Source of the DNA: Takakia lepidozioides | Taxonomy: Eukaryota; Plantae; Bryophyta | Assembly: GCA_030704615.1 (NCBI GenBank) | Contig: CM060732.1 | Span: forward strand, 35,216,001 to 35,280,000 | DNA length: 64,000 bases | Direction of reading: 5' to 3' | In this document: positions 5,125 through 63,560 of the stretch, one piece after another | How the letters are laid out: the number at the start of each line of letters is the position of its first letter | How positions within the stretch are numbered: position 1 is the stretch's first letter | The notes under the pieces: generated by a model | Told to the model about the DNA's origin: nothing | Database searches by the model: none | The model's input: the letters and a program-made list of their open reading frames with translations, nothing else | Position numbers and translations under genes: made by a program

Positions 5125-5170
<46 letters not shown>

Positions 5171-6346: not shown

Positions 6347-7304
6347 CCAACATCCGAAGGATTCTTGTGCGAACCTCCATTCATAGATACAGTGTGGAAC
6401 TTTAGGTGCTGACCTCTGTGAGAAGTTATTTGGAATAGTGTTAATACAACCACTTGAGAACAGGTCCTCTGTGTTTTGATTGGCATGAAGTGCAACAGGG
6501 TTTGACTGTGCTTCATACATGCAATTGCTTCATACATGCAACATAGCTAGACATGTTTTGGAAGATGCTTCAGGACATGGCTAAGTTAAGGTAGTGTTCA
6601 CTGAGACCAGCAAGAACTGGAGTAATTTTCACCTAGAGGGAGGGAGATCATCTTCATCCGCCCAACGGATTCCACCACACATTCATCTAACAGATCCATC
6701 GATCCAACGGGAGCTCGACTCCTGAGCAACAGAATAACGTAGGACAGAGTCATGCATCCAGGTGGGCACGGCTGTAACACTCGAGCAGACGCTCAAGCGT
6801 CGTGGCTGCGAAGATGGAATGAAGCAGCAGCTGGCTGCGCTCTCTGTGCAGGGCTGAAATCTCGTTGTCTCTTTCTATCTCCCGCAGGGCCATACTCAAA
6901 CATTTGAATCTCTGTGGCCTTTCAGGGCTTCAGCCCATCCCTTTGGAGCTCTGCCCCACCCCCTTGCTTCCCCAAGCACCTCCCGAGTGCCTATCTCCAG
7001 GTAGTCCTACGAAATCCATGGCTCCTCTCTCTGGCTTGCTGTGTTGTGATCTGCTTCCAGATCCCATGAGCTCTCGAGTCCACATACAGGCTCTCCTGTC
7101 TGCCTTAGCCATAGTGGCATTTTTTCGCTGCTGCTTCCCGGGGATAGCGAACCCCGACAGTGTCAGGAAGCCATATATATCCTCTCCTTTTGAAAACTGA
7201 CCAAGATGTTTCTCTCTCCCACAATTGGATTTTAAATGATGGTTGCTTCAGGCTCTTCTGCTGTCTCTCTCGCTAGATAATCCATTGAGGAACTCTAGGA
7301 AGCA

Positions 7305-11781: not shown

Positions 11782-12093
11782 TCACCGTTGCTCAGATGGG
11801 GGTTTAGCCGTTGCTGGATGCGACGACTCCAAGGCCTGGTTTCCTTTCCCAGAAGGCTGTAGGTGGGGTGCGTCACGAGAAATGTAGTACGTCCATGTGC
11901 CGAGCGCTACAACAACAACGGCAGCTGCAAGGTACACTGGATATCTGGCAACTCGGCCACCACTTTGTTGGTGTAAAACCCCCCCAGGGCTATGACCTGG
12001 AGGCCTCCTCGCCCCTTCAAGTCCGAGGGTCTTGAGCTCCTCCGGACTCATCTTAGTGGTATCTACATTTTTCTTCCAGCTATGATCCGACAT
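11782..12093 (-). CDS. Small single-pass membrane protein (103 aa), uncharacterised plant family
   Basis: Intact ATG-initiated ORF. N-terminal VDTTKMSPEEL...RPPGHSPGGVLHQ motif resembles conserved uncharacterised plant proteins (recalled). It is followed by one hydrophobic segment, VYLAAAVVVVALGTWTYY. Confidence 0.7.
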   Translation of the reverse strand: MSDHSWKKNVDTTKMSPEELKTLGLEGARRPPGHSPGGVLHQQSGGRVARYPVYLAAAVVVVALGTWTYYISRDAPHLQPSGKGNQALESSHPATAKPPSEQR

Positions 12094-16200: not shown

Positions 16201-18215
16201 CTAATAGTGAGGGGTTTTCTAAGGAATGGAAGGATACTGTAGAAAGAACTGTTCTTATGATCCATGACAGCCCCGATGTACTGTAGTATACCAGAAAGGG
16301 ATACACACCCATTAGTTCTTCTGAGATTGCTGAAGCACTAGAACATCTAAAGGGCTATAAAGCCAGTGGGTGTGATGTCATTATCAACGAGTTAATTAAG
16401 CATGGTGGCGATCGTATGTCAGAGGCTCTTGCCTCCTCTTTAACCTTATTTGGAAGACTGAAATGATACACTTTTGACGGAGAGAGGGTCATGTCAATCT
16501 GTATAAGGAAGGTGACAGAGAAGAGTCTGGGAACTACCGCGGAATTACACTTAGCTAGTTGGCAAGCTGTTTTGTAGAATAATAAGCATCCGTCTCGAGG
16601 TCGATATGCTTTCCATGAAGGTCAGGTGGACTTCTGGAGAAATAGGGGTTGCTTTGAATATATCTTTACGTGAAGCCAGACTATCCAGGGGAGGAGAAAA
16701 AAAGGAAAACCTACCTTTTGTCTGCTTCCTGGATATTAAAAAGGTTATGACTGGGTATGGCGCCAGGCTGTGGATTTGACTGTGGTCTTCTGGGGTCAGG
16801 GGATAAATGTGGACGATGGTTCACAACCTGTATGCGAACACCAAAAGTTGTGTTATGGTCAATGGCCAGAGTCTAGTATCTTTAACATTGACCAAGGTGT
16901 AGCTCAAGGTTGTACCCTCTCCCCACTGCTCTTCAATGTTTTCATGAATCAGCTCCTTGAGGATGTGGGAAGCGAGGGATTTGGGGTAAAGGTGGGTGAT
17001 GCCACCATACCAGCTCTACTGTTTGCGGATGACTTTACGGGCCTACGGGATACCCCATCCAATCTTCAGGAGTTGATTGATCGTCAAAGAGGTACTTTGA
17101 CCTGTGGAGGTAGAACCGAATGTTAGTATATGCACGGTGGTGGCCTTTAATGATCGTGTTGAGGGAGGAGGAGATCTCAAATGGACATGGGGCAGTGAAG
17201 AGATCGTGTGCTCCCTTCTACACATATCTTGATGTTGAGTTTGCCACCAGTTGTAACTAGGATGTGGATATACAGAAAGTGGTTCAAACAGCTAAACACA
17301 AAGCTTTGGATCTCACTAATATCTCCACTGCAGAGGGATTAATACTGAAGTTAAAAGGACCGTGCTATGGAGTATGCATCTGCCATGTGGGAGGGGAAAT
17401 CCAAAAGTTTAGAATCCAGTCAGCTTTCGGTGTTCGAAGAGAGCATGCCAGCGTGTTCTAGAAAAGCTAAATGTGGCTGTTCGGGGTGAGTTTTGCAAAC
17501 CACCCTTGACCTGTGGACGTGAGGAGTTCAAGGGCAGATGGTGATGATCAATTCAATCGTCCTGTTAAATGGCTAAAGTCCGGGTGGAGAAGGGTAGAGC
17601 AGATTTTCAAGTACCCGTATATTAGGCAGGAAGAACTGACCCCCTGCTAGATGAAGCTGACTTGGAGACTGAAGTGTCCAAGCATGAGGATTGTCTGAAC
17701 AAAATGAAGTCCTTGAAGTTGTTTCCAGTTTGACATGAGTGTCCAGTTAAGTGTCGTGAAGCACCACCTCCAGAGGTTGCATTTCTATTAGTGCTCTTCC
17801 CAGATTGGAGCATCACCCAAAACTGAGGCTGGGGTTAATGAACGTCACACCCCATTGACACAAACATTTCGGAACAATTTCTGTCATTACAAATACTTTT
17901 TGTTCATACTGATGTGACAAAGTGGTTTGTTGTGGGAAATTCCTGCAGGTTGAAGCCCTGGCACAAATCTTGAAGCTGACACTGCAGAAACTGGATGTTG
18001 CATTTTTGCGCCCACCTTACAACTACATGATTCAAACTGCTCCTCTGAAAATTAATGATTTAGCATACTACCATTGGTATGTTCGCATTATACCCCATCT
18101 CATCACTCTCGGTGGATTTGAACTTGGCAGTGGATGTTACATCAACTCAGTTGCACCTGAGGCTGCTGCAGAACTTCTTCGAAATGTGAAGGTGGATGAG
18201 CCGCCCCCAGAGTAG
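13226..18215 (+). CDS. GalT-like HIT-superfamily nucleotidyltransferase (ADP-glucose phosphorylase / galactose-1-phosphate uridylyltransferase), 4 exons
   Basis: Exons 13226-13639, 13740-13805, 15048-15356, 17949-18215 in frame. Motifs ELRRDP...WVIIS..R..RP, CTFC, WRVRIVVNKFPAL, GSHEVVIETP, KN.G..AGASMTHSHSQ (the HSHSQ form of plant At5g18200-type enzymes), YHWYVRIIP, GGFELGSG. Confidence 0.93.
13868..14325 (+). mobile_element. Diverged LINE family A 3' fragment in intron 2 of the GalT-like gene
   Basis: Aligns by eye to 15720-16170 (RLKFKL.AG, CPLC zinc knuckle, aaactgggcgcagggtc). Confidence 0.8.
15480..17750 (+). mobile_element. Degenerate LINE reverse-transcriptase pseudogene in intron 3, interrupted by a younger insertion
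   Basis: Frameshifted RT motifs LKGYKASGCD, GNYRGITL, FLDIKKGYD, QGVAQGCTLSPLLFNVFMN, ALLFADD. Confidence 0.88.
15658..16198 (+). mobile_element. 5'-truncated LINE family A copy (C-terminal CCHC zinc finger + 3'UTR; RTE-X-like) with 12-bp TSD
   Basis: ORF end RLKFKLRAGSLPL...CPLCGQPEDNIHFLIHCP. TSD tctaatagtgag at 15646-15657 and 16200-16211. Confidence 0.9.
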
Positions 18216-18397: not shown

Positions 18398-18650
18398 CCC
18401 TATAGATTCAAAACAGATTTGAGGAGAGCATCTCTCTGGTGAGAGAACACCCGACTCTGAATCAGAAAATGAATACTGTCTGCAGGTTGCCCACACAACA
18501 TACAATTGCACTCTCCCTTTCCTCTTTCCTTGTATTTGCTATTCAAAGGTAGGCTTCCCGCCCTGAGTTTAATTTTCAGTCTAATGCCGAGAGTGGGTAA
18601 GCCCTTCAGGTCATCCAGGATGCCCTCCCCCATGTCATAGACTGGAAACA
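18398..18650 (-). mobile_element. LINE family A internal fragment (zinc-finger region), antisense
   Basis: ORF DDLKGLPTLGIRLKIKLRAGSLPLNSK...CMLCGQP is closely similar to 15670-15900. Confidence 0.88.
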
Positions 18651-18842: not shown

Positions 18843-19124
18843 TTCCACATGTCTTTCTTCCTTCCTTCAGTAGAGATGGCAATGGTACTACATATAGTAT
18901 CTCCAAGGTTCAAAGCTCCTTGGTGAATAGCTAGTAAGACATTGTGGAAGTGTGAAAGAAGCCTTGTTGGACAGAATGACTAAATGAGATGTAGTTTCAT
19001 AGAGTGCAATGATGCCAGTATACTAATGTTCGGTACTGGTTAGGAGGCTTTCAAGAGTTATGAGCACATAAGGGAAAACCAACTTCATCACATCAATATG
19101 CAAGTTACATATTCTAATCTTGCC

Positions 19125-19183
19125 CAAACTGGGCGCGGGGTCAATGGCCACAAGGCTGCGGCAAACAACGTCTTATGAGTACA
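19125..19183 (+). mobile_element. ~60-bp LINE family A 3' terminus with 15-bp TSD
   Basis: TSD tctaatcttgcccaa at 19113-19127 and 19185-19199; ends in GAGTACA. Confidence 0.9.
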
Positions 19184-19369
19184 ATCTAATCTTGCCCAAC
19201 CACAACTTTTGAAAAACTAATCTCCTTCAAAGTAACCATGGCATGAGGAACCAAGCACATGGCTCATGGGAGCCCAACAAGGGAAGCGAAAGAAGAAGCC
19301 AAACAAGTCTCCCGGTTTCTTGCACTATGATGGAATTGGAACATGTTCTAAAGCAAAAGAAAAGCTTGT

Positions 19370-20654: not shown

Positions 20655-20916
20655 ATCCTCTAGAAAGCCCTTTACACAAGCATCAATCTGCCGTGTGTGA
20701 GGTGCCCAGCAAGGGCTTCAGGCTCAGCCTAGAGATTTTCAAAGTTGGTGAACAGAATTGCAGACGTTGTGAAACATTTTCAGAAACATTGTCAGAGAGA
20801 GTGTACTCATAAGACGTTGTTTGCTGTAGCCTTGTGGCCATTGACCCCGCGCCCAGTTTGAGCGGGAACAAAAGGAACAGAACCTACCTCTGTCAGGGGC
20901 TGACGTTGGTAGTACG
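20655..20916 (-). mobile_element. LINE family A fragments: internal piece 20655-20757 and 3' terminus 20802-20916 with 13-bp TSD
   Basis: Reverse complement of the family A sequence. TSD ttgtcagagagag at 20789-20801 and 20917-20929. Confidence 0.88.
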
Positions 20917-22526
20917 TTGTCAGAGAGAGAGAGAAAGAGAGTATGGCACACATTCATAAGTTCATGGGCTGACTTACCCATCTGCAGTTGCACAGTAAAG
21001 GCGTCCACCAACTGGTGTGGCAAGCACATCCCCTGCGAGACAGACATATTCCAACTATATTGTAATTGGTGCAATCCAGAGACTTTCAAGCATTTGGACC
21101 TTTTTCTGTCTAATGATATATTTCTCAAATCCTATTGAGTGTAGTTCTTTTTGCCACTCTTAACTGTCAATGACTCTCTTTTTGTCTCTAGCTTGTCTTC
21201 AAGAGGGAGACAATATGCCCACATGAAAGATCTTGATGTTGAACACAAGCAGGACTTACCCTTGAAAAGCTGGATGTCTCCCATATGCCTAAACTCTATC
21301 TTTCCTGAGCATCCCCGTCCTCTTCTTCAGTTGCAGGCTGCACTGGGTCCCATAATTGCAGCACCAACCAACAGCATACTGAGCCGACATAGGACAAATC
21401 TAATCTCAGTCAACAAAACCCCTTCTGCAGCTTCCTTTACTCTACACCACCTCCTCTCATATATTACCTAAGCATCATGTTATTGTCACTTAGAATTGTC
21501 TGGACCCACCCAGTGTGCCCCCACAACACAGCTTCAGACACTGGAACCCAGTCACACGTCCTCCATGCCTACATCTGTCTCTTTGCTGTACCTAGTGTGA
21601 TAAAATAAACATCACCCAACGGACATAGTAAGTATTCGTTGTCCTGCAACTAATTTACATGCACATTCCGCATACACAGCCAAAACTCCATCCTTGATTA
21701 CATCTATGTTGCATTGAAAGAATCAAAACTTTTTCTTTTTCACTGTCTCCTGTACGCTGCAAAAGAGAAATTGGGATGCTGAGCTGTTTGTCACAAAGAT
21801 GTCACTGCCCAATGACATTAACTCTGCTGTGATTTCCAACCGACGGGTCACTTGAAGAAGAGAGCAAAGAGAAATTGCCTGTAACAAATTAGAGAACATT
21901 TCTGGTCAGACTGATGAGGTAAGACACCAGCCTGATCCTTGAAAGTTGTAAACATGTTTGGATACAGCTCATCTATCACTCCTGTTGCCTTACCAAAACA
22001 CATTACTCATAAGGTAACAAACATATTGGGTATACCTACACCTACATCAGTGAGATGGAGGAGAGCAAGAAGAGCACTTTTGTGAAGATCTCTCCAGATA
22101 CACTCCTGCACCAGCCACACAAAGCTGAGCCTTTATAAGATTTCTGGAAGATTAAGAATCTCTTAAATTGTTGCGCTTGTGGGTCCATAGGGACCGACGT
22201 CAAAAGGAACAGACAGAAGAGAATAGTTGTGCCATTTTGCCCTGAGTGGACGGTTGCAGAGAAGCATGAGCAGGAGGGAGAGAAAAAGTACCAAAACAGC
22301 TATCATGGTTGGGGCCGCAGGTCTTGGGACTTGAGTGAAATATTCCAGAAACATAGGTAAAGATTCTGTAGGCTTTGAGATGCAATGTGGCTTGAGGCTC
22401 AACCTCAAGACGTATAATGTATTTTCTATATATTTTCAAAATACGTATATCTTATCTGAAAAAATAAGGGATGGGCAGTCATAAAAAAACTTCATGCCGT
22501 AGACCTCAAGCCCTAGGATCCCCATC

Positions 22527-22628
22527 CTAGGCCACATGATCTCAGGCCCTAGAACCTTAGGCCACATGACCTCAGGCCCTAAGACCTTAGGCCACATGAC
22601 CTCAGGCCCTAAGACCTTAGGCCACATG
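22527..22628 (+). repeat. 30-bp tandem repeat x3.4 within the left TIR (inverted counterpart 30978-31045)
   Basis: ttaggccacatgacctcaggccctaagacc units. Confidence 0.95.
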
Positions 22629-25600
22629 TACATAATACGTTTTAATATTCTTCGAAAATCGGGGAACAAAGAAGGGAACCACCCGGTTTAGGGGTTCGCA
22701 ACTCAAGGCGGGAGTTTTGCCGCTGCTCCTCTGCGGCAGAGGAGCTCTTCCCAGATCGAGAAGGTACACCAAGCAAACTCTGGTCTTGGAAAAACTCGGT
22801 AATTTACGAAATTTGAGTGTCGTGCAGCGGTCGATGCGGTTTCCTATTGAAGAGGAGGTCAAGGCAGTGGTAATTGGCAACGGTTGGGCTGCAGCAGCTA
22901 CTGGTCTTCATTTTCTTCGAGTTTACTCTGAAGCTTGCAGGTATGACATTTCCCATTCTAACGACTGAGCAATCCTGTCCATCTGTCCTTTTCCATACTT
23001 TACGGCTTTCGGTCTGCAAGAAGATTGGCTGCCTCACCTCAAAATTCCTGTTTTTGCAGCAACACGTTTGCAATTCTGACTGCAATTCTGACTTGCCCAG
23101 CAAGATAGGCCCCAGTACATCCGTAGCTTGCCTTAGCCCTTTCCCCATGTGAATTTGTTTGAAAGTGGAAGTGGTGTCACAAAGTCTCATTGCCTAATAA
23201 AACTTGAATGGCCTTGCAGAGATTTGTTTCATCTTTGGCAGGTCCAATTGTAGTACTAGCAGGCCATGAGCAGCAGTTGGCCGTAGACACTCATGCCTCC
23301 AACCCCCTACCTTCCGGTGAAGGGGGGCTTTGTACGGCAGAGATTGCCATTGTCGTCATCTCTTATTGAAAATGGAACTTGGCAATCCGTGTCATCGTCA
23401 TCGGATCGCTTTGGACGTGTTTCATGGCAAGGTGCGTGTAGGTAGGAAGCAGCAAGACCTGATTCCAGGGTTGGAGTCTCTCACCGAAACGTCAAGGCCA
23501 GTGAGCTCTACATTCAGGATAGTGCGGCGGCCGTAGAGGAGTTGGTAATTCCCCTGAACGACATGTTTCTTAAGGATGGTTTACTTATGTAATCAAAGCA
23601 AGCTGGTCCACTAGGAATCACGTTGGTCTCTCCAAAGTTAAATGCCAGCAAGCAGTTTTATTTATCATTGTGCTGCAGCAATACTATGTAATAGGAGGTA
23701 GAGTTGTACTAATGGGAGAGATTGCGTCAGAACAGTTTACACCAGACTGGAGTATGCTGCAGATTTGTTTCTTGATTTCCGTGTAGATGTGCAAATGTGC
23801 ATCTGACTCCCTGACAGACATTGTCTACCTGAGAGAGAGACCAAATGGAAGTGGAGACTGCAAGTAGGATTATTTTCTGACGTTCACTCCTGATTGATCG
23901 AAGGCAATGGGGTGTTCTGGGGACTGACATTTACGGGTGTACTGTGGCAGCCGCTTGGCAATGGGACCGTTCATCAACTTCATGGTATAGAGGTGGAAAC
24001 TCCAAGTGAGTGAGCTTGAACTTACATCCTTTCCTGTACAGGCAGCTGTAGTGTCGTTTTATTGGAATGAGTGCCCCTACTGACCACATTGTCAAACATT
24101 ATTTGCTGAGAACTTCAAATGTTTTTAGAACAAGACAGCTGTTTATGTTGTTTAGCTGCTGTGTGTGCACAATGGTGACTTATAGATTTCTTGGTTGTTG
24201 TTGCAGGCATGATGGGCAGTGCGAAGACGACATTGGGAAAAATATTGTTTGAAGCCCTTGGTTACTATTTTTGCGATAGGTTTGTAAATGCTATTTACCC
24301 AATCCATTCTTTGTATCTGCACATGTATCTGTCTACTTAATATATAGGCCAATTTTGTGCAACCAATCATTCTGCATATGCAAGATGCCATCCCCTCCTA
24401 TTCACCTTTCGAGCTTGCTTTGTTATACTTTGAGAAAGGGGGTTTGGTGTTGTATAAGATTCTAAGGAGGTTTAATGTGGCAGTTATTATTGGCACCTTT
24501 GCTTTGAGCCATCCATTCGTACAGTGTGACACAGCAGATATGGGCAGCCCCTATCATTACACTCAATGCACAACGCACTGCCATGCTGGTGGCTGACTTC
24601 ATGAAGGTCAAGTCCCTCTCTCTCTTCTGGATCTTCACTTTTATGTAGCTCTGGCGCTTTGAGTTTGTCTCAGGTTTTACAACAGCTCAAGTGATTTCAT
24701 CCCAGATGAAGTCCATATTACACATGTATTAATCTGCGTGAGTGGAGGAGAGTATTGACAGATGACAATTGTGGTTGCATGGTGCATATGGAGGATCTGC
24801 AGACCAGCTCTGTTTCGTGGTCTGTCGAATTGTGATCCAGAGAGAGACTGATATTGCTGGTTGGGACTGCACCAGGGTGCTGGAAACGCAGAGAGGTTCC
24901 AGAATGAACGGTTTTGTTGAGGTTTGGGGGAGAAGTCAACAGACCTGGTGTTACACCAATTAGCAAAGTTGTTGGCAGCCCACGTTGCAAGACTAAGCAA
25001 AGATAAAGAGCACTTGAGTGGCCGTGAAGGAGCCTGCGGAGCGGTCTTAGAGCAAGGAGACAGAGACACACTTGCCAGCTCTTTTGGGAATGAGAGAGCA
25101 CGGTTAGATCTGGGGTGTGAGTAGTTCGATGATATGTCCTAGACTGACAGCCGTTGAGACTAAACTAATAGAACAGGTGGCATGTTCTTATGTACAGGTA
25201 GTGTCTACGCCAGTTCTGAGCATATCCTGTGGCACACTCAGACTTGGCAGCAGACATCCTGGAAATTGAGTATTTATGGGGTATAGTGTATCTTACAAAT
25301 GTAAGGTCTAAACCTTAAACTGTGAACTGTTTGCTTATATACAAGTCCTGGAAATTGTGGGCGTTCATATTTATAAGACTCTGAACTGTTTGAACAGACT
25401 GCAGCCCTGCACAAACATGGTCTTTTTATGCTTACATGCCCTGGGAATTGTGGGCATTGACGCCCACAATTTCCAGGGTTTGCACTGAAGCATTTCTAAG
25501 CTGTTCTTAGGCCACTAACACACCCTGTGTAGCTGCAGAAATTGTTCCCACGGGACCCTATAGATTCACCTGTAAGGCTGCTCAACCCCTGAGCTTAGAG

Positions 25601-26106
25601 TATGGTTGGATCACTTGCTCATTAAAGGACCACAGAATATCTACAAAAGGACCCCTGCAGCACATTTTTAAGACTGTTAATGTCTCACTAACAGCAGCCC
25701 TTCACAAACAGGGTGTGTTTGATTCTAATATACATACTTGCAGAGCCTTGCAATGATACCGTTCTTAGGCCATTAACACCCTCTAGCACATTTTTCAGAC
25801 TCTGCTGCACTGTGTCAATTGACTGCAGGGGCCTACACAAGAAAGGTATGAATTTCCAGGGCTTTCCAAGCAATCATTTCTTTGTCTTGCTAAGGGACCA
25901 ACACCCCATGTGGCCTCGAATAATAACCCTAAGAGCATGACACAAGAAGAATCCCCACTCATGCAAGTCCGGGATTCAGGCTTATTGCTGTTTCAATGAA
26001 GGGGCTAGAAAATGTGGGCATCAATGCCCACATCTTGCGAATGTAGCAACAAACATAGAGTAATTAGTTCATCAGGGCTGGACTGAAGATTGGCTTGCAT
26101 GTGCAG

Positions 26107-27135
26107 AATTACAACTCCATTTTTGAGTATCCCAACAATCGCGAGGGGCAAATTCTGCACCCTCTGCTTGAAGCTGAGGTTGTACGACCTGATATACAAC
26201 TGGATGCAGTAAGTTGGCTATCCATACACTACTGCTATTGCAATTTCAAATCTACAAGATTGGTGATTAGCGCTAAAAAAATCATGATTTGCAGGCACAT
26301 ATGGTGGGGCATTTGATTTGGATGATTGCAACTAATCATCTAGAGGTCTCTCGGCCCTTTTCGTTTTTGACGTTGATTATGCTATGCGACCAAGTTCCTG
26401 AATCAAAGGACCTATCAGAAGGCGTGGACCCCAGATTGCGGGCTGACTTGGAAAGGGATTTCCGGCTTGGATGGGCATCTAAGTGGAGTGTGCTCAAATT
26501 GTTCCGCAATTCCTACCATGAGGCCCAACAACTGGTTACAAAGCTCGCTACTGAGGAGATTTTTGAGGAATTAGGTTGGAGCTTCTCAGACTTCCACCTT
26601 GATGAAACTGATTGGCGTACACAGGTCGAGAAGAAAATTGAGGGCATAGTCTGGAGTAATCTCTTCAATGGAAGAGAATGTGTGGGCAAAGCACTTAGGG
26701 CTGGCTTCTACAAAGCCATTGAACAAGCCCCTGCGACAGAAGAAAAAAAAAAAAAAGCTTTCGTGCAGGCCTGGACTTGTTCACATCTGCGGCTCTACGG
26801 ACCACGTTCTCAGGTTCTTGCGCCATAGAGGCTGACCAGTTCCTACGGGAGGTATCATTCCATACCTCCATTCATGAAATGCAACGAGCATTGTTCACAA
26901 AGACAATCCATGCTATGTCGATGCAGGGCGCACCCGACTCGCTGTATTCATAACAGGGTTGGAATATTTTGGGGGTTCAAAGATCACAGTGGAGCTTTTG
27001 GACAGATCAGACGAGCCTTGCATTCAAGCAGCTACATGCTTCCACCTTCTTTTTCTCCCACCATACAAAGATCTTGAGACAATGATCCGGAAGATCAATT
27101 ACTCTACAATGGATTCTAGCTATGGACGACCTTAG
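26107..27135 (+). pseudogene. HECT-domain E3 ubiquitin ligase remnant (two frameshifts)
   Basis: Exons 26107-26208 and 26295-27135. Repaired translation: VGHLIWMIATNH...PESKDL...VDPRL...ALRAGFYKAI...LDLFTSAALRTTFSG..AIEADQFL...LFTKTIHAM/DAGRTRLAVFITG...IQAATCFHLLFLPPYKDLETMIRKINYS. Frameshifts at the A14 run (26743-26756) and ~26918. Confidence 0.8.
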
Positions 27136-28945
27136 GTCCCAAAGATAATGGTCCCTTAAAGACCATAATCAAGAGCAAGGGACAATAGCGAGGGCCCAGT
27201 GATGAAAGACAAATTTAGAAATTGGCTGGAAAGGCCCGGTGATGTAGCTGGTTGAAGCAGAATGGCCAGACCTAGCTTCAGGGTCAAGCACAACCGTGCA
27301 CATTGCCCAGACAGGTAGCAGATCCACACTATGAGTTTCAGTGAAGGACATACATTTGAATCACTGGATCTAGAGTCTTTGTGACCAATCAGACTGTGCA
27401 AGTGTTAGATGCAGCAAGCTGACAGATCATTCCAAATCCTAAGAGACTACCTTGACAAATAGAAGAATGTTTCCTCAAGCTAAGCCTTACCAGCCTGACC
27501 ACCACCTGCTTGTGCCAGCTTGTTCAAAGATTTGCCCAGGTACTTTCCTTGTCTCTCAGCAACCTGCACTCCCCCAAAGAAGCAAACAATTGAATTTCAC
27601 TGAGCACTACTATCCACATAGAATCAGTCGAGCAATATAGGACTGGACGTGAGAGTGGCTGCAATGCTTCAGCGTTGCATGATATCCAGATGGAGAAATA
27701 GCAAAGATCATCCAAATTGCCCTTCATCTGGCCAGATTGTAACTGACAGCACTGACATGGGCAAGAGCTGGGAGCACACTCTTGCCAGTACTCTCGAGAT
27801 AGCCAGCACAATCACCGACAAAGCCAGTTCCAAGCAGTTACATATGACTATCAGTCAAAAATCACTTTTGTAGGAGAAGGGCCTACTGCAGCTTGATCTA
27901 GCAATTAACAAACCTAGTGTTAATATAAAGATGTCTGATAATGTGTTGGGTTAGTAAAATGTATCCCAAGAGTCATACTCTATTTGTGCTCTTGTTGATA
28001 AATTTTCGAATATATTATATGCCTTAACAAGATAAGAGCCAAATGCATTATAATAGTGTATGGTAAATGCTTACACTCTTCGTTTGCGGTAGGGCTTCCA
28101 TTAGTAACTGGATCAACTGCCAAGCTGTGATTGAAACACCAGCCAACAAATATATTCCATTCAGCAAGAGAGACTCCAATTAAGTGAAAGAAGCCTTGGA
28201 AGAGAAAAAAAGAGAGTTGTCTCAGGAAGACCAGGCACCTTCCACCAGGGGACTTCTTCACAGGTAAGGAGTGGACAAAGGAAGAAGATCCAACACCCGT
28301 TGATCAAACCAGCAGCCCGTATGGCACCTCCGTCCCATCTGTAAGCACTAATTTGTCTAGCAGAACATCCTTGACTACATCTTGCATCAGCTTTACCCCA
28401 GTCTGAAAACAGTTATGCGTTTAAGACCCTCCAGCTTATCCCTCCAAACCCTACAATTGACTGACGATGGAGACTCATCCCACAAGTCGCCTCTCTATGA
28501 GTCAGGGTAAGTAGTGCTGAAATCAGAGTCGTGCAGTCTGCTACAATGTCAATCTCATCTCCTGTTACTCAATTATTGCATTCGTGCATCAGCCATAGTT
28601 CAGGCATTTCGACAATAGCACGGGACACTTGGATCCACCAAGTTGTAAGGTCAGGCCTTCTGAAAGACTCGCAACAACTTCATAAAGCTCTATAGAAATA
28701 AATCAATGTCGTCTGCTCAGCATAACCTTTCCTTCAACTGCACAAGGCACGTTAGGCACTACCCCATACCTTGATCAGGTGCCTGGTCGCGTACTCACGG
28801 AGTCGAACATCAAAAGATGACAAAATCTCCTTTGCCTGGCATGACCATTAAGACACACATAAAGAACAATTTATATCTAGTTGATGGAAGCAATAGGCAG
28901 CTGAACACAGAACTGCCTAGATGCTGACAGTACAAGAGAGAAGAA

Positions 28946-28975
28946 GAAATGAAATGAAATGAAATGAAATGAAAT
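28946..28975 (+). repeat. (GAAAT)6 microsatellite
   Basis: Directly visible. Confidence 0.95.
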
Positions 28976-29183
28976 GGTACTTTATGACGTACTTTATAAG
29001 AAAGAAAGCATGTCCAGAGCAAGCCCAGATGGAAAGAGAAAGGAATGAACTTGCCTAGAAGCAAATTTAGAGGACCAGACAGATGACAAGGGGGTTGAAG
29101 AGGTATAGAAAAAAGCAAGTAGTATACAGACCTCAATAAGTGTGACCTGGATAAAATCTTTCACATGGCCGAACTAGCCGTAG

Positions 29184-29292
29184 ACGTCTCTCCTGATGAA
29201 GTCACTGAGCTCACCACTGAGTTCCACCCCTGTAGGACCACCACCTACGACAACACAGTGTAGCAGTCTTGCCTTCTCATCTGCTGATATCC
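29184..29292 (-). pseudogene. NDA: Captured exon fragment of type II NAD(P)H dehydrogenase (NDA type)
   Basis: [37 protein letters not shown], with its upstream splice acceptor (ttgcag) retained. Confidence 0.9.
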
Positions 29293-29639
29293 CTGCAATC
29301 CATCTGAGCAGCAGTCTGTTTGAGTCAGGATGATTGCAGCATAAGAAAACAAGTTCGAGGGACAACATGCTCCTGGAACAGAAACCAGAATGAATAATCC
29401 ATATTGTCAAACCTGTGACTGCCATTTTCTCACCAAGTCATTCAGTACTTCAGAGAGATAACTTTAATTGGCAAGAGAGTGAAGCCAGCCACACCAGGAA
29501 TTTCACAGAGCATCAGATTGAGCAGCAGTTAATCTCGGATATCTCTTGCATTTTCCACATCTCAAAGAAAATGTGCATACTGGTGCACTTCCAGATATAG
29601 CCAATTACAGGGTAAAGACAGCAAGGCATTGCAACTCAC

Positions 29640-29773
29640 TGTCAAGATGACAGCATCAAAGTGTTTTTCTTGCTTCTTGGATGAACCTCCTTTGAAAAAA
29701 GAAACTGTCCAGGTACTGCATGCTGGATTGCCTTGTCGGTTGTTGGCTAGTCCCACCACTGCTGTATTTAGCC
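29640..29773 (-). pseudogene. Captured exon fragment of protoporphyrinogen oxidase (PPO2-like)
   Basis: RLNTAVVGLA...STWTVS...HFDAVILT followed by a GT donor, where PPO2 reads DAVIMT|APL. Confidence 0.65.
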
Positions 29774-29957
29774 TTCTATCACATGAATCAAGTCGTCCAC
29801 AGTGGTGTCTTCCCTAAACAGCACCTGCAATCCCATGGTGAGATGTAAAGCACCAATTAGCTCTTCACGGCACCACACAGATACATGGATGGTAGTCACC
29901 TATGCATAATGGATCTTGTATTTGCAAAATTTGGTAACAAAGCTTCTCATCCACATG
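29771..29957 (-). pseudogene. DRG: Captured two-exon fragment of DRG (developmentally regulated GTP-binding protein) with its intron
   Basis: HVDEKLCYQIL(fs)YKIHYA* | intron 29825-29899 | VLFREDTTVDDLIHVIEG, versus the recalled DRG sequence HVDEKLCYQILHEYKIHNAEVLFREDATVDD.IDVIEG. Confidence 0.88.
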
Positions 29958-31909
29958 TAGCTTCTCTCCAAGGGTAGAACTTACTTGCCACTACTGTCCT
30001 TGTCAATGGTGATTCAGTTAGAGTCACCCCTGAATCACGATAACTTGCAGCCCCAAGTGACAACGTTCAGATGTGGACCCACTTTTGAGACCCACCAAAT
30101 GTCATTTATGCCCAGTCCTCTGCCAAGTCACAGATACACACAACTATCAGGGTTTCTATCAGTTGTTGCTTGATTAGTTTGCAGCTTATTGCTGCTCACA
30201 CAACCTGGATGCATAGAACCTTGCATGGGAGCTTTTACTATTTGGTCACAGGCTACTAACACATCTTTAATGCTTATCCTTGCCTGGAGATTCCGATAGC
30301 AACTATGGGAAATTGAACATAATGAGTGGGCCTATAGTTGTGCAAGATTGCTTGCTTCTCGTTAGAGGAGTATCAGACAGCAAAAACGGCATTTTTAGCC
30401 GGGTCTACCAAAATACAGGGTTCAAGACATGAATTTGGAAGTGCACTACCTAGTTGGATCAGAGCCTTCTTCCGAGCAGAGCATTCTTTTCCGCGCTGCA
30501 GTGTCATCTGCTGCCAAAAATTTGGAAGACAAGGTTCCACCCGCTGTTCCACATCATCATCATCGTTCGTTGTGACTTCAAGCTTCTGATTCTGCAGGTC
30601 AAGTTCCTTGGTTTCAGCTGGGGCGCTTGCTACAGCAATGCCATGCACAAAAGCCGAACAAACTCTGCAGGAATGAAAATTTCCATGGAATCATAAACAA
30701 GGCACCGAGGAAGACAGCAAAGGATCGAATGAGCTCATTGTTACCTGCAAAGCCTGGACAGTCAAGCGGTTGTTCCTTTGAAAGAGGATCAGTGGTATGC
30801 AATGAAGCCTTCAGACATGACACACAAGACCAGAGTTTGCTTGGTGTACTCTCTCGATCTGGGAAGAGCTCCTCTGCCGCGCAGCAGCAAAACTCTGGCC
30901 TTGAGCTGCGGAGCCCTAAGCCGGGCGGTTCCCTTCTTTGTTCCCCAATTTTCCGAATATTAAAAACATATTATATACATGTGGCCTAGGGTTTTAGGGC
31001 CTGAGGTCATGTGGCCTAGGGTTTAGGGCCTGAGGTCATGTGCCCTCGGATCTAGTTTTAGGGCCTAAGGCCTAGTTATGGACAAACGACCTCAAAGCCT
31101 ACGCCCAAGCCGAATTGCCCCAGGTCTTACAACCTCAAGCCTTATGTCCTTGGGCTACAAATTTTTACTTAAAGGTGACCGATGAGGAAATGCCAATAAA
31201 ATATATGTATTAAATTTACTTTATACGACTTTGTTGGAAGGTATTATACGTATTTTAGCCTGAGGTTCAATGTCAAGCCCAAGAGAATCTTGTCTCGAGC
31301 ATAAAAGAATCTTTCCTTGAGGATAAAAGAGATTCTCCTAATAATGTCATTGAAACAAGAATCTTATCTTGAGATTAAAGAATATTCTTCCCAAGTCCTA
31401 TGGTTTTTGGCATCTTGTCTTCAGGTCCATCGTATTTTGGAATCTTTTCCAGAATGGCTCTTTAGGGCTTCCGTACCTGCGTTGGTCACGGTCGCCGCGA
31501 CGCGTCGCTCCCCATCCGCCCGCCCGCCTATGTTGCCGCTTCAAACCCGTCATACATGAATCATGTCACACAGCCATGCATGTTGAACATGCTCTATGTC
31601 ACACAGCGGAGATGCACATCACTCATATAACACAGGCATCCATCATCACCAAGATATGACACCTCCACATAGATGCATGGATCGTCACACATCCATTCAA
31701 AATTCAAATTTGAACTTCTAAATAAATATTTTACTCGATTGCACCGGATGATTTCTGTCATGTACCAGATGATTACTTTTGTACGGGCAATTGTCCACAT
31801 GTCTCCATCTTCCTCCTCCCCATCATCGTCCTCAAAATTCTCCGATCACCATTGTAGCAGCGTTTGACACTCGTGCATGCAGTGTGAACCCGACTGCTGC
31901 TGAAACGAC

Positions 31910-33993
31910 ATGTCTGTACATGACAGAAGTGAAGAGTTTATCCCCCAAGTTGTTCCCCATCTTGTTTCGAATCTTCGAAATCAAGTGCAATCTCCGAACG
32001 CAGGTGCTTTCAATCACAATGTCTTACAATGGCGTTATCAATGGCATGGTATCCCTCCCGGTAAAGACGACGCTTCAGTGGCCTACATTCCATGGAGTCG
32101 TGTGAATGATTTCATAATTGGGGAATCATCCCGCCCCGATGGGCCATGCACTTTCCGCAAACATCGCCAAAGAGGTTGTCAACATGGATCACTCCTCGCT
32201 CCACGCACGAATAGTGCCTTAAGTCTAACAAGGTAAAACTATGTGAACTCCATGTAATACAGTACTATTTCGTGTCATCATTGGGGGCCCCTTGTTGTAT
32301 TAGTCTTGGAGTCGCTCCATTGCAGTATGAGTAATGTACCATGGTTTCTTTCGTAGGTATCACTGCTCATATGGGCCAGAGGACAAGACGACTACCCTCT
32401 TGGAGGTAACCTCCGCCATGGCAGCCAAGAAATAGAAACCACGACCTCCCAAAAAGAAGGGGAGAAAGCCAAGACTTGTGGGATCTGCGAGCGAGCAAAA
32501 ACCAAAACAAATGAGGACCACAAAAACGAAATCTGGAGAGGGCATAAAGAGGGGATATGTATGTCGGTTTGTAGTGAAGCAATGCTATGTTGACCCTGAA
32601 ATTGCAGAGTTGGTATATTACGAGAAGAGACACGTCAATGGAGCTGGAGAGATATGTCATGGGCCTACACATGAAACTGGACGTGCTGCATTAGCTCCCC
32701 ACGTCAGTGAAGACATGAAAGCATGGGTAATGCACAATTTGCGGTTAGGGCTAAGCATCAACAAAATAATGGCGAAGCACACGCAACGGGTAAAGGAGAT
32801 GATGGATGCTGGATTGGAGGTCAACCGTGATACTTTCCTCCTTTCATGGGACATCCGGAATATTGCCAACAAATGTGATGAAGAAACATTCAAAAAACAC
32901 TCAAATGATGCACGTAGTGTCCGCATGTAGGTGGAGGCCAACCCACATAGTGTTTTCTACTACCAGGAAGAATCGAACCACCCTGCATGGACTTCCAATG
33001 ACAGAAAACTCGACCTCCCATTTGTGTTGGGCATACAAACTGAATAGCAGAAAAAACAGATGGTGAACCATGGACATTCGCGAATAGTGGCGTGCGATGC
33101 AACTTTCGGGACAAATGGAAAAAATGTGAACTTCATTATGATGCAATGTGTATTAGAAGACCGGCAAATGCACTTTACATCATAACATGTACATTCCATA
33201 TGCATGAAAGAATTTGTAACATCTGTTTTACATGATTGTTGCTGCAGTATCCATTGTACACCATGATGGTGTTTGATGAGTGGCTGAATGGAATTCCAGC
33301 CGCGTACATTATCACGGCTAGGTGCAAAACCAAAGATCTGCAACCTTGGATGGAGGCACTGAACGACCAAATGAAAGCCAGGAAAGTCGACTGGCGCCCC
33401 AATGCGTTTATTATCGACGATTCAGATGCAGAAATTGCAGCCATCAAGTACCTGCAACTTTACAAAACAATTGTTTGGTCATTGCTTTTGAAGATGTTGC
33501 ACCCTCATCTCGAAGATGGGCTCATTGCAAAGTTCTGTGGATCTCTCATGGGCACATCAAAAGGTGGTCTTCAGAATTTGGTGACAGGTTCACAATCCCC
33601 TCCCCTCCATGTGGTCTAACTCCTCCAAATTTGAAATCCCCTTCTATGTCTGTAAAAAGCCCTCTTCATGGAAGTCCCTTGCATATTAACCTCATGGCCT
33701 CAATTTCTACAGAATGGCAGAGTATTCTTGAATTGACACAGAAGAATGACTTCCTCCAGCAACATCTGCTTGCCCTCGTGAGAGCTGCAAAGGGAAAGAT
33801 TTTGGACTTGACTGCCATGATGGAGGAGGGCCTTCAATACCCTGGTGAAGAGCCAGTTATGACTGTTGTTGATGATGGGAAGGGAAAGTCCCTCGTACGC
33901 TTCAAAGACTTTTTGGAGAGGCATGGGCGCAATCACAATGGCAGGCCCGCACCCGCAGATTGTAGGACGAGGAAGAGGCTATACACAGGATGA
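31910..33993 (+). pseudogene. MULE transposase of the At1g60560/At4g13970 (SWIM) type, with stops and an internal deletion
   Basis: VAYIPWSRVNDFIIGE, Y.CSYGPED, RG.VCRFVVK, RHVN.AG.ICHGP, FVLGIQTE*Q, VACDATFGTN, YPLYTMMVFD...PAAYII, FIIDDSDAEIAAIK. Homology breaks off after AAIK, so the third catalytic E and the SWIM region are missing. Confidence 0.88.
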
Positions 33994-35057
33994 AAGGCAT
34001 GAAGGTACTGCTATACACTTCCTGAAATTCAGTTTATAAAGTACAATCCTGATGCAGATCCACTGACAGCATGAATTCGACCATTTCACTGTGGAGGGAC
34101 AATGATGCCACCTCTCAGCAAGGGAGATGGAAACTGTTGGATACGTGCGCACATATATGCCTTGTCCTGGCATGTGAGCTCTCATATAGTTCCGTAATTT
34201 TGAAATTATGTGTTAGGTACTCTCCCTACAATCACAATTTGTATTGACTGATGCCTCTGCTGTTTTGAAGGGATTATACTCCCTGCTCTTCAATCCACAT
34301 GCTATGGACTATGCTCTGGATGGCAGGGTATACATGTTCAACGTCTTTGTTAGCAACATAATGTGGACCTCTTTCATCTCAGTTCAGAGTTTGTTTTCAA
34401 ACATGCACCGACACTCCATCATAAACGTACATTATAATGTACAATTTCAGTCACCAAGTAAGCCTTTGTTTCACATTCGACCAGATTTCATGTCAGTTGA
34501 GGGTCAGTTTGTAACGTGCACTGGCACTCCCCTATAAACTGAAACAAATTAATGGACATCTTCAGTCATCAAGTAAGATCCTCTTCCCTTATCATGCACA
34601 GATCCGTGCACCCGCTATGTATCCACAACGTGGTCATATTTGAACATGACACTTTTACATCAACACTAATTGGAAGTCAACACCATGTTTTCACCACACT
34701 GTAATTACCATAAAATGTGGGATAAGCAACATGTGTACACAAAGATCATTCTTCTACCACGTCAACCTGCTAAGGAAATGTTTGGGCCTCCGCTGGAATG
34801 TCTTTTTTCCCGCTCCCTATCATGTACTACATTCAGAATGACCTGACTCAAACTGACACAATATCATGAACCATGTAACACATACATACATACAATTGAA
34901 ACATACATCGCAGCTCCATAAGTGGCACTAAGGAGTCATGGATTCTAGGTCGTTTCTCAGTTGCCTCTTTCCATCGCCCTCTCATTTCTTACTCCTTTGA
35001 GCTGCCCATCATATTGTGCTTCTGACTTCCCTCTCCTTGCAGTCCGCTTCTTTTTCA

Positions 35058-35796
35058 ATGGCCGACCTTCCCAGTTATTCCTCCATTCCATGGCTACAGG
35101 AGCAAGTTGAGGTTGATGAAGACACAATATAGGAGTTGTTGGGTGACCTTGGCGGCATTGTGGGGTCCCGCGTTTCCGTTCTCGAAGCTTTGGTGGACTG
35201 GTCACAACCAACAACGGGGGACATTATTCTCAGGGGACACGACTCTGCAGGTAGAGTGGCTTGGTGTGGTTTCTATGATGAAAGTACTATTGAGTGTTCA
35301 AAGCTTCCAAACACGATGGTTCTGAGGTTCAGATTCTTGTGTGCCCCCAATGAGGAGTGGGGTCCATATCAACTAGGTTTGGATCCAGACAAGGAGAATG
35401 AATGCTTTCATATTCTCATTGTATTCCAGTGGATGGGCGGAGGTTGGGACTCCGTCAAGCTGATTGACGCTCTTCCCTCCCCTATTTGGAGGATGCTTCA
35501 GCGAAGGCAAACACCAGATAGGCCATGGACTGTTGTTGGAGACATTTGTGTCACCCTTGAGGGTGACACAATGCATGTGATGTTTGCATCACATATGCAC
35601 ATGCCAAAGAATGGCTCGTCAGTTTTCATGCGTGTTGTACCTGACTGGGGGGGGCAACCATTTCCATCACTCTGTTTATTTCTGTCATTGGGATGGGCGA
35701 GTTTGTGTATGGAAGGAGCGAATGGTTAGGCTGCAGGTGGATGTTCCTTCATATGACTGGAACTTCAAGGAGGTGGACTGGCTAGAGGCAGCATGA
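35058..35796 (+). pseudogene. Intronless cargo ORF of unknown function (~245 aa if repaired)
   Basis: ATG 35058, one TAG at 35130, and a frameshift at the G8 run (35647-35654) joining ORFs 35136-35729 and 35584-35796. Confidence 0.5.
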
Positions 35797-36582
35797 AGGT
35801 AAAAGAATTGCAGGACTGGAGTTTGACGTGTTTTGCATTGGCCCCACGTTTGAAGTAGCACATGTGCATGGCCTAGGGGTCTGATTTCGGATCTGCATGT
35901 GGATTGTCAAGTGTGAATAAAAATTCATATTCAATTTCAGAAGATGAATTGATGTGTGTAATCTGCATGAAGTTTTGGTAAACATTGCCCAGCTGTATCT
36001 GCATTATCACAGTTTGTTTTTGTCTTCAGTTTCAGTTTCAGTACTGTTAAACTCATGGGTGATACAATGTACCACCAATGTGAAAGTGAAAGGCAGTATG
36101 TATTTCCATGGTTTGGTTGTGAATATGCATATGGATGAAAATCGCATGTACATGTGAGACAGATGGAAAACAGTTGGTGACAGTGCCATTATATAATGCA
36201 CTTGTAACGCCTACACTGTCGGTGGCATGTCCCTGTCATTGTCTCGCCCAGGTTGTTGTCGCTCTGGCCGAGGGTTCATGTAACACAGGTTGTGCATCAT
36301 TGGGAGGATATAAAGGGTTCTAGAATAGACAGCTCTCGCACTTCTCCATTTCATTGTCTTCACTTTTTCCTGCTTGCACACCCATTTGTGCCATACTGAT
36401 TTCATTGAGGTCATCCTTGTCATAGTTTTCTTGGGTTTTCTGCCCACATGAGGTCTTTTGTGTTGCAAGTGTTAGGGTCCTCTTGTACATCTCATATTAT
36501 CAGTTTGCACTCTTGTTACTACTTCTGAATTTAGGCTGAGTTTGTGTTGCAAGTTCGAGGGTTGTCATCTTTGCAGTTTCCC

Positions 36583-39500
36583 TCACACTTTGCACAGTTT
36601 TGTGGCCTCTGTCCACTCTGGGTTTGGAGGGTATAATCCTCGCAGTACAGCCCACACTCTTGCAAACAAAGGCTTCAACATCTTGTGTTTATGCAGGCTT
36701 TCAATGCTATTGAAGTGAAGGTAGCGCTCGTGTTCCAAAATAAGAACACTCCAGTGGTTGCTCCACAAAACATTTACACCTTCAGCTTAGTCTTCATCAG
36801 GATGTGCATGAAATAGAACCCATATGCACGAAAGTGATAGGAACAGAGGCAGGTTAAATGGAGAAAACTCACTTAAATGTAACAGGGACAACGAGCACCT
36901 CGACACCAATACAGTCAAGGGTAGGGAACCTTGTGTCCACCCAAGCCTGTATGGAACTGACTCCGTTTCCAAATTTCTTGCAATGGGTGCGAAGACACAT
37001 CCAGGCGAAGATGTCTAGCACACGAATTTTACTGCACACATTATGTGGAAGAGACAATTTTTTGCAACACACCCAAAAGTCCATCACATGGTCACTTGTC
37101 CAGCCCCTTTCATCCACCAGATCATATGCATCTTCTAGTAAGAGGGATCTGAGGGGACAACGAATCTTGGAAGAACCAGACGTCCGTAGTCTTGCTCACC
37201 ACTGCACCACAGCAAATCCTGAACAGACCCCACAGAGCATGTCAAGTGGCTGCATGGACAATGTAAGCATACACTACAGTTTCAAACAGGATTGAAGGTA
37301 TACCATAAGATTTACGATAAAGAAGGGCGCACGGGCACATCCACGAACACAGTGCATTATGACAACAACACAATCTGCATGACAGTTACATTGTATGGGC
37401 CAAAGAAACATATGCATGTGCAACAAATGCAAATGCATACCTGGACAATGATTTTTTCCCACGGACTGCAACTACTTGATTATCGGTGGATGGAAGTTGA
37501 CATAGCGGAGGATTGTCTGCGCTGGCAGGTGGAGTGGTATGGGTGGCAATGGGATTGGCAAAGGTAACAGAGTGAGAGCGTTTAGGTCCTTTGTGCACAC
37601 TCCCATGCACATCACCATCAAATTGTGTCGTGGGCATATGTGTTGTTTGGAGTATTCAGACCATCAAAAATCATCTTGAAACGACGAAGGGGGGAGGGCA
37701 AGGCCATAATGTGCCAATGTTGCATATCATACTGTTCAAGTAGTTCACCATGAGGGGTTTTGGACGACCCAACATTGGTTACTGCATGCACAATTACACC
37801 CTCATCAGTGGGATCTCGGACAGAAATGGGGGGAGGACTCACAAAGTTATGTGATGAAGTGAAAGACCCCATAGGGGGAGGTGGTCCACCAAAGTCAGGG
37901 AATACCTGACTGCAAGACAAATCCATTTCAAGTTGAGTCAGGGGACCTGTGTCCGGACCAAGAAGGTCGGCACAGACTTCAGGAGATGGCACATGGTGTT
38001 CGGGGAGGTGGCTCAGAAGTCGTGATGCCTCATCATCAGACCGGCACACAATCGCTTTCCCACCGTTGGTTGTGGATGCAAGGTCATCAGTATTGCCCTC
38101 TGAGGGCATGCCTACAGTCTTTGGATAGAGAGGACCTGTTTCTGCTGCCTGCTGCACCTCATGTTCTTCATTTTCTGATTGAGGCATGGATTTGGTGGCA
38201 AGCTCAGCAGCATTGCACAGTGTTGCGATATTTGCATTCATGGGGATGTCTACAAGGTGTGCAGTTGTTGCTGTGATGGGTGGTGTATGCGGTCAGTGGA
38301 TGATAGCCCACTTGCCAACATCACCACCCGCTTTTGCAAAACGTGCTTCAGCCACCCCCTGCCTGGCCGTGATGAGAGCATCTGCATTGTGTTCCAAATT
38401 TTTCAAAGCTTGCAACACCGGGGATTCACCATAGTCAAAGCTGCCTGCACACATCCAAAGCAGATGTTGCACATGAGGGCGGGTTAAGGATGGATTTGGC
38501 ACATGACAACATGGTGGACAATATTATTTGCTAATTCAATGAAATCTTGCAGCGTGGACATTCGAAAGCATTGTAATGACATACCTGGTGGGCAAGGAAG
38601 CCACCCCATGTCCAAGTCCTCGCGATACCTCAACATTTCAGTAAATTCAAGGATGGCTTTATCAATCCCCATTCCTGGTTGTCCCCCTCCACACCACAAG
38701 ACCTCAAAAGTTGTACGATTAACAATGGCAAGGTCACGGATAGTCCTGCATCTGACTTGCTGCATAAAAGCCTGCAGCGACTGTATGGCGCGGTCTTGGT
38801 CGTCTTTCTGTCTCTCCAGAAGGTCTGCCATAGAGTCCAGCACCTCCCTTCGAGCCTGCTCGTATGGTGCCATGCAACCATATAGAAAGTATCCAATCTC
38901 AAGAAAATTATTGGCTGCATTTGTAATGGCCACGTGACCCTCGGTTGTGTCTAGAAGTTGGTGGAGGAGGTCGTGCAACACAGAGTGGACAGGGGAATTG
39001 TCTTCTGAACGTGACACATCCATATGACAGACAAAAGAGAATGGTCAGTGCAGGAGAGGATTAGAAGAGGTATTACCATGCGTCGGACGAACCATTGACC
39101 ATACGCTTTACCCATCATACTATTAGCAAATTCCGCGCTCCCCACAAGTGTAGCAAGACTTTCTAAAAAGCAGGGATTGTCAGGTGAAGGGAACCCATCA
39201 GGCAACAAATTGTAGTCCATGAGGTAGCTAAGACCTGGGCGTGCAACAAGTGCAGGTTTGGGGGGCATGACAATGTCAGATTTCAGTATTAGAGAAGGGC
39301 ATGCCACAAAGGCTTGTTTGGCCTCTTCTCTAGTCGTGGATTGAAGCAAAGCAGACTTGATCAACTGATCCAGAGTTGGTGCCTCTGTATGTGTCCTCGT
39401 TGGTGGGTCTGGCATCATGATAGTTTCCTCGTCCATTGCTAAGTCCCCCGCCTGAAGAGGTACACGGGAGTCCTTAGCTAGTAGCCGCAAATGCCTCCTT

Positions 39501-39889
39501 CGCTTCATTTCTGGCTGAAATTCGTCTTCACCCCCACTGTCCTCCCGGCCCACCTTCGCCCGCGAGTTTTTGAGCGGCAGATGCCCATGGTCCTTCAGAA
39601 CAGTCTCCATCAACGCCCTCTGACCGGCTTCAAACACAGGGTACATTTTTAGTTTAGCCCCACCCTTCCCAACAGCAGCTCACCCATTTATCCTGTGAAC
39701 GTTTAATTTTTTTTTGTCTTTATACACCTGTTTACAGTAGATACATATGAACCGCTTCCTGTTATTATCCCCGGGTTCATCAAGCCTTGCCCTCGTGTGA
39801 GCCTCGCAAATCAATGCTTCCCACTCATCAGTATCATATTCCTCAAGGTATACCCGACGCGCTTCGAGCATGGTGGATTTTTTCACCAT
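36583..39889 (-). pseudogene. Transposon-borne Ulp1/C48 SUMO-protease-like gene with an N-terminal C2H2-like finger
   Basis: CIYCKQVYKDKKKLNVHR near 39700, then long ORF segments, then GWTSDHVMDFW...VLVVPVTF | NHWSVLIL...HFNS. No catalytic Cys segment seen. That all segments form one gene is inferred. Confidence 0.7.
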
Positions 39890-49574: not shown

Positions 49575-49921
49575 TGGCAGCCTGAAGAGAGCATCCATTT
49601 TCTATACATTGTCCGGGGCATTCTCACCAGAGAATGACCCTCATCAGGAACATCCAGAACATTGTTCCTGCACCTCTGTTCACCAGCTTTGAAAATCTCG
49701 AGGCTGAGCCTAAAGCCCTGGCCCTGTTGGGGTCTAATTGCTGGGCCCAGCAGATTGATGATTGTGTAAGGGAACAGACACTACCTTTGTGAGGGGCTCA
49801 CTCTGGTAGTGGGACCTACTTTAGTCTAAACAATTAGTTCAGGCTTTCCAGGTTCTGCCCAAACTGGGGATGGGGTCTATCGCCGCCACAAGGCTACAGC
49901 AAACAACATCTTATTAGTACA
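49575..49921 (+). mobile_element. LINE family A 3' copy with an internal ~80-bp inversion
   Basis: Collinear with 15820-16198, except that 49770-49850 is reverse-complemented. Confidence 0.85.
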
Positions 49922-60861: not shown

Positions 60862-60900
60862 GTTTTTAGTTTTAATTATTTGTTTTTGGTATTATTTGAC

Positions 60901-63450: not shown

Positions 63451-63560
63451 GTAATATTTTAATTTAATAAATTAAATCATACAATTATAATATTTAGATT
63501 ATTAATTGATTTAAATTCTCATTAGGTTTCTAGGAAAATAGAATGGAAGCCATTGTTGTC

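Follow-up and report, generated by a model that had tools for sequence, protein, structure and literature searches.

A mosaic of gene fragments between long inverted repeats in the moss Takakia lepidozioides, possibly a dead Pack-type DNA transposon

Results

We analyzed a 64,000-nucleotide stretch of the genome of the moss Takakia lepidozioides (GenBank assembly GCA_030704615.1, contig CM060732.1, positions 35,216,001 to 35,280,000, forward strand), which we call the window, and within it an interval of 8.5 to 9 kb at about 22355-31317. A long inverted-repeat arm lies at each end of this interval, and the space between the arms is filled with pieces of unrelated genes, introns included, which lie on both strands. 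The explanation that we favor, and to which we give about an even chance, is that the whole is one dead, non-autonomous Pack-type terminal inverted repeat (TIR) DNA transposon. An earlier reading made without database searches (the sequence-only reading) had placed a gene-capturing element at 22325-31400. We found an interval of element size there, but these limits are slightly too wide, and the inverted similarity stops at 22355 and 31317.

The left arm (22355-22790) and the right arm (30825-31317), neither of which has a strand, each consist of a strong block beside the gene fragments and a weak block on the outer side. The strong blocks measure 265 bp on the left (22526-22790) and 231 bp on the right (30825-31055, or to 31074), and the inverted pair 22526/22549-22790 and 30825-31055 is 87% identical over 241 nucleotides (BLAST E value, about 1e-77). 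Self-BLAST of the 64-kb window down to word size 7 found no arm copies beyond this pair. The outer blocks, 22355-22455 and 31317-31196, are weak but real, with a local score of 45 compared with 24.7 ± 3.7 for shuffled sequences and a maximum of 39 among about 1,000 real-genome control segments. Outward of 22355 and 31317 we detected no inverted similarity. With the weak blocks included, the arms are about 436 bp (left) and 493 bp (right) long. The repeats of about 260 to 500 bp described in the sequence-only reading are therefore present, the longer figure depending on the weak extension.

On the cargo side the edges of the arms are sharp (22790 and 30825). On the outer side, TAG opens the strong block on both arms (22500 and 31074), yet the inverted similarity runs outward from there to 22355 and 31317. 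Both arms also contain the 30-bp tandem arrays noticed earlier. Tandem Repeats Finder reported 3.4 copies on the plus strand at 22528-22628 (period 30, 95% matches), in which the unit is two 15-mers in alternation, and 2.3 copies of a 29/30-bp unit on the minus strand at 30978-31046, mirroring the left array. We found no second inverted repeat within 22790-30825 that could bound the mosaic.

We searched the gene pieces between the arms as single stop-free segments or exons rather than as joined spliced models. The first piece, on the plus strand at 22827-23366, comprises two colinear exons from the middle region of Mcl1/Ctf4 (WDHD1). Exon 1 (22827-22934) matches positions 80 to 131 of the Mcl1_mid profile (E value, 7.9e-6) as well as WDHD1 chains. 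Both of its splice sites are intact (AG acceptor, GT donor), and it begins 36 bp inside the inner edge of the left arm. Exon 2, within 23208-23366, matches the next part of the profile, positions 133 to 170. The segment 22827-22934 had previously been called PPO2-like, an assignment that these two colinear Mcl1_mid exons replace. Next on the plus strand is a shikimate kinase-like P-loop exon at 24200-24290, which matches AtSK2 (PDB 3nwj; E value, 8.2e-5) and, weakly, the SKI and dNK profiles.

On the minus strand at 27483-29330 lies a mid-protein fragment of NDA, an alternative type-II NADH dehydrogenase, with at least six colinear exons and their introns. In our search the 29180-29330 exon hit type-II NADH dehydrogenases with an E value of 9e-8, so the NDA piece named in the sequence-only reading holds for this exon by search. 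Five further segments (about 29125-29165, 28307-28400, 28235-28303, 27727-27830, and 27483-27590) we take to be NDA exons from their likeness to Arabidopsis NDA1; Pfam and PDB searches with these five gave no match. A DRG (developmentally regulated GTP-binding protein) piece had also been proposed. The minus-strand segment at 29771-29960 may be a two-exon fragment of this kind: one exon weakly matches MMR_HSR1_Xtn (E value, 0.015), and the other we presume by eye to be DRG from its resemblance to plant DRG. A PDB search with the DRG exons gave no match. Finally, a plus-strand exon at 30347-30430 may be an SGT1-like TPR exon. Its sole PDB match, a weak one, is an SGT1 homolog (E value, 0.88), with 11 of 15 core residues identical. 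The shikimate kinase exon and, weakly, the SGT1-like exon give names to exon-like segments that had been left unassigned.

Introns are retained throughout these pieces, and the cargo was therefore copied from genomic DNA, not from cDNA. The longest internal open reading frame (ORF), at 24680-25138 on the minus strand, has no Pfam match and no usable Atlas match and is probably spurious. We recognized no gene fragments in the immediate flanks, in a test of low sensitivity. CpG is depleted in the interval, but the interior and the flanks are alike in this respect.

One piece of the mosaic is of a different kind. At 26104-27135 on the plus strand we found the 3' part of a divergent HECT gene of the type carried by GingerRoot transposons, consisting of a small exon (26104-26211) and the last exon (26298-27135). 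The last exon runs to its natural stop and keeps the catalytic Cys motif, and the ORF of the C-lobe matches Pfam HECT with 25.8 bits. Two frameshifts, the first at an A14 stretch (about 26742-26757) and the second close to 26905-26925, break the remnant, which lacks the N-terminal part of the gene. Its family is tiny: a search of 1.84 billion representatives returned 24 matches, each a short ORF. A 183-amino-acid ORF upstream of the C-lobe had one relative in a word search, and a word search with the C-lobe piece returned nothing. The remnant is 51 to 63% identical in amino acid sequence to its best relative, the HECT protein of a transposon at locus L001 (ENA ERZ25073694 ctg129559). The sequence-only reading was right that this piece is HECT; it had counted it among the fragments of unrelated genes, and the piece comes not from a host gene but from a gene of the GingerRoot/IS3EU transposons, in which the family sits.

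The transposon at L001 occupies locus coordinates 4941-12041. Its inverted repeats (4941-5716 and 11236-12041) are about 800 bp long and 90 to 96% identical, both ends start with TAGGG (TA...TA), a 6-bp target-site duplication, CCTGTG, flanks it, and an integrase core domain is encoded within it (rva_4, 1.3e-30). GingerRoot elements are characterized by an integrase-type transposase, ends of the form TA...TA, and a target-site duplication of 6 bp (PMC6839031). The L001 element has all three and is a complete, bona fide GingerRoot. Its HECT gene points towards the right repeat, with palindromic arrays upstream.

We also noted other sequences in this ENA assembly. Diverged copies of the GingerRoot HECT gene lie at L001 1403-2239, L001 10001-10834, and L002 9798-10833, some with in-frame stops; the L002 copy has no integrase within 10 kb and has a DUF7869 transposase-like ORF nearby. 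Both long terminal repeats of the L001 element contain the same ORF (5431-5715 and 11237-11521), which has no Pfam match at an E value of <0.01. We take it to resemble the N terminus of a MAP65/PRC1-type protein and so to be a putative captured gene fragment.

Palindromes lie just upstream of the HECT remnant in the window as well, at 25439-26032 with no strand: one of 40 nucleotides (25439-25478), one of 20 nucleotides (26013-26032), and a half-site at about 25347-25364. The palindromes are near perfect. Their core, TGTGGGC-N6-GCCCACA, occurs twice, with 0.03 occurrences expected, and would read CG-N4-CG if CpG decay were notionally reversed. We found no ParB or methyltransferase exons around the palindromes.

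To the right of the interval, at 31900-40000, is the remnant of a multi-gene Mutator-like element (MULE). Its transposase, on the plus strand, is represented by WRKY/FAR1-like and MULE-domain pieces at 32436-33616, for which Pfam MULE reached an E value of only 0.014. A multi-exon gene with a C2HC/C2H2-like zinc finger in exon 1 follows at 37.6 to 39.9 kb on the minus strand. We detected no terminal repeats belonging to this MULE. To the left of the interval, at 19.7 to 20.5 kb, is an F-box/kelch gene.

Discussion

Our best explanation for the interval, one dead Pack-type element, would work as follows. The TIRs, about 440 to 490 bp long and composed in part of short repeated words and 30-bp tandem arrays, would have served as binding sites for a transposase acting in trans, and the element's own coding interior would have been swapped piecemeal for genomic DNA from elsewhere. 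Capture would have taken place at the DNA level, as the retained introns suggest, probably by template switching during repair. The product would be the present set of Mcl1/Ctf4, shikimate kinase, NDA, DRG, and SGT1 pieces together with the terminal (3') part of a HECT gene like those of GingerRoots. That the arms are the two ends of a single element is suggested by two observations: they are the sole inverted pair able to bound the mosaic, and the mosaic starts only 36 bp inside the left arm. Its size fits the Pack type, as do its long repeats, the introns that it keeps, the number of its parent genes, and the missing transposase (we found no MULE or integrase domain inside it); gene-carrying GingerRoots and Pack-MULEs of a lycophyte share all of these traits (PMC6839031). 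Such an element would be old and inert: its arms are 13% diverged, it has no target-site duplication, its HECT gene is frameshifted, and its CpG is depleted.

Several results weigh against this explanation. The sequence-only reading had looked to target-site duplications of 8 to 11 bp as a check, and our scan of plausible boundary pairs (22150-22540 by 31040-31600) found duplications of 7 to 11 bp only at chance level and at unmatched termini. No duplication of 5 to 6 bp was coupled to matching termini, and in wider zones 6-bp duplications with TA/TG...TA/CA ends likewise occurred only at chance level. The identity of the arms is uneven, at 87 to 93% beside the cargo and about 65%, with indels, on the outer side. 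Conservation of transposon ends is usually highest at the terminus, so this gradient is the opposite of the pattern expected. The arms have no similarity to the neighboring MULE or to other DNA of the window, and a tblastx comparison of L001 5701-10000 with the window found no integrase remnant. Two exact-pattern scans of metagenome contigs and a word search with an ORF read through the arm, in collections that do not include this plant, found no arm copies; these negatives carry little weight, and movement of the element is only presumed. Finally, another inverted pair in the window, with 88% identity, is formed by two independent ends of long interspersed nuclear elements (LINEs).

The strongest rival, possible but unlikely, is that two copies of one transposon family lie here facing outward, with their true termini at 22790 and 30825 and nothing but flanking DNA in the 8 kb from one to the other. 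The sequence-only reading, too, had allowed for two independent insertions of a dispersed repeat. The right arm would then be the 5' terminal repeat of the neighboring MULE, and the left arm a solo end pointing left. The shape of the arms fits this rival, with identity that peaks at 22790 and 30825 and decays away from them. So does the layout on the right, where a MULE-type transposase (plus strand, from about 31.9 kb) lies 0.6 to 1.1 kb past the arm and reads away from it, which is the canonical arrangement, and is followed by the zinc finger gene at 37.6 to 39.9 kb, which is like an accessory gene. The LINE ends show, moreover, that independent insertions do form inverted pairs in this window. 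Against it, the neighboring MULE has no partner repeat in 39.9 to 45.1 kb (the best score, 39, equals the control maximum), the left copy has no partner in the window, and the two copies would have just about 450 bp in common. Words of the arms are not enriched in the neighboring MULE, and no painting motif is shared. This rival would also leave a gene-fragment mosaic that runs from edge to edge without a carrier, since there is no other internal inverted repeat.

If the interval is one Pack-type element, the superfamily of its carrier has still to be considered, and here MULE and GingerRoot/IS3EU are about equally likely. We regard as tentative the proposal that the carrier was a Pack-MULE, mobilized by Mutator-like transposases, whose HECT piece was captured from a GingerRoot copy. 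Pack-MULEs typically have long repeats and carry pieces of several genes on both strands, and a MULE remnant adjoins the element. Like the Pack-MULEs of rice, maize, Arabidopsis, and Selaginella lepidophylla, the Takakia element has long TIRs, no transposase, and intron-containing fragments of several genes in mixed orientation. Its size is near the average of 8.81 kb reported for Pack-MULEs in the lycophyte S. lepidophylla (Cerbin et al. 2019, PMC6839031). In contrast to Pack-MULEs, it has neither a 9- to 11-bp duplication nor, within the window, a link to a MULE end, the outer parts of its repeats are poorly conserved, and one of its pieces comes from a gene that belongs to a different transposon superfamily. 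The proposal is further weakened by the unlikeness of the arms to the neighboring MULE, and it supposes that a piece of a second, much rarer kind of transposon was taken up. Of the Pack-MULE suggested in the sequence-only reading, the inverted repeats and the mosaic of intron-containing fragments are real, but the 7- to 11-bp duplication and the similarity to the neighboring MULE are missing.

Doubtful, too, is the proposal that the carrier was a GingerRoot/IS3EU derivative that kept its own HECT 3' end, lost its integrase, and took up host fragments on either side. The kind of HECT gene seen here is specific to GingerRoots, and TA opens the strong repeat block on both arms. As in the L001 element, long inverted repeats surround a HECT gene that points towards the right repeat, with palindromes upstream. 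Gene fragment-carrying GingerRoots of S. lepidophylla average 8.57 kb, and 73% of them lack the DDE region (Cerbin et al. 2019, PMC6839031). The Takakia element resembles them in its size, in DNA-level capture with introns, and in the usual loss of the integrase, and the group is present in bryophytes and lycophytes (PMC6839031). The Takakia element also holds the accessory HECT gene carried by the moss branch of GingerRoot, as in L001. However, there is no 6-bp duplication at the TA edge of the strong block, where the flanks read ATGCCG and GTTATG, or at any other boundary. The termini are not demonstrably TA...TA, and the repeat runs on past the TA. There is no trace of an integrase, and the HECT piece is 5' truncated, as is every other fragment. 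The repeats far exceed the published 100 to 150 bp, and five or six host fragments stand against the published maximum of two parent genes (PMC6839031). The L001 element differs as a complete GingerRoot, with its integrase, TA...TA ends, CCTGTG duplication, and 90 to 96% identical repeats, and the arms in the window have no DNA similarity to those repeats.

It is improbable that no transposon is involved and that an inverted duplication of some 450 bp, formed locally, surrounds a pseudogene-rich junkyard, or that the block lies within Helitron or CACTA ends. In favor of this view, our scans of plausible boundaries found no duplication or defined terminus, and only two arm copies are known. Against it, the CACTA termini that the sequence-only reading had allowed for are absent (CACT[AG] does not occur in 22200-22540, nor [CT]AGTG in 31040-31520). 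Helitrons are not expected to have long arms full of tandem arrays or to carry cargo on both strands, and pieces of one to six exons from at least six unrelated genes would hardly come together in 8 kb without a capturing element.

If the interval is one Pack-type element, it is a bryophyte case of gene pieces being rearranged by DNA transposons, which has been described in few seed-free plants. It would bear on the question of which superfamilies were gene-capturing in the early lineages of land plants, and it would be of use for genome annotation, where such fragments are otherwise called as genes. Gene capture of this kind, elements of this size, and their presence outside seed plants have already been published, so the element brings no new mechanism, and this copy is dead. 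The sequence-only reading had presented Pack-MULEs as mostly angiosperm and a few kilobases long; the lycophyte average cited above removes that ground for novelty (PMC6839031). We concluded that the element is of an ordinary kind and of modest interest, mildly unusual in the number of its parent genes and in having another transposon's gene among its cargo. It is a tentative idea that we are dealing with a Pack-GingerRoot of a moss, an IS3EU transposon that kept its own HECT tail while pieces of five host genes replaced the remainder. If true, it would be the first Pack-GingerRoot in bryophytes, with far more parent genes than the two at most reported per element. The mirror case, a Pack-MULE with part of another transposon's accessory gene, would be an instance of capture across superfamilies.

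Other features of the window

The second inverted pair of the window (15668-15897 and 18415-18644, 87.8% identical over 230 nucleotides) consists of two LINE 3' ends with ORFs that encode the C-terminal zinc knuckle of non-long terminal repeat reverse transcriptases. A reverse transcriptase fragment at 16740-17123 accompanies them. These LINE pieces sit in introns of a GALT-like gene, of which we recognized exons at 13226-13795, 15030-15362, and 17913-18212.

A dispersed repeat of about 115 bp, with copies 82 to 97% identical, occurs at 4899-5131 (in tandem at 4.9 to 5.1 kb), 16076-16203, 19122-19190, 20798-20914, and 49851-49934, and it often adjoins LINE-related fragments (13868-14308, 15721-16179, and 49571-49772). 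The hexamer CAGACC, counted on both strands, occurs 53 times in the whole window, and 20 of these occurrences are in the last 4 kb (60000-64000).

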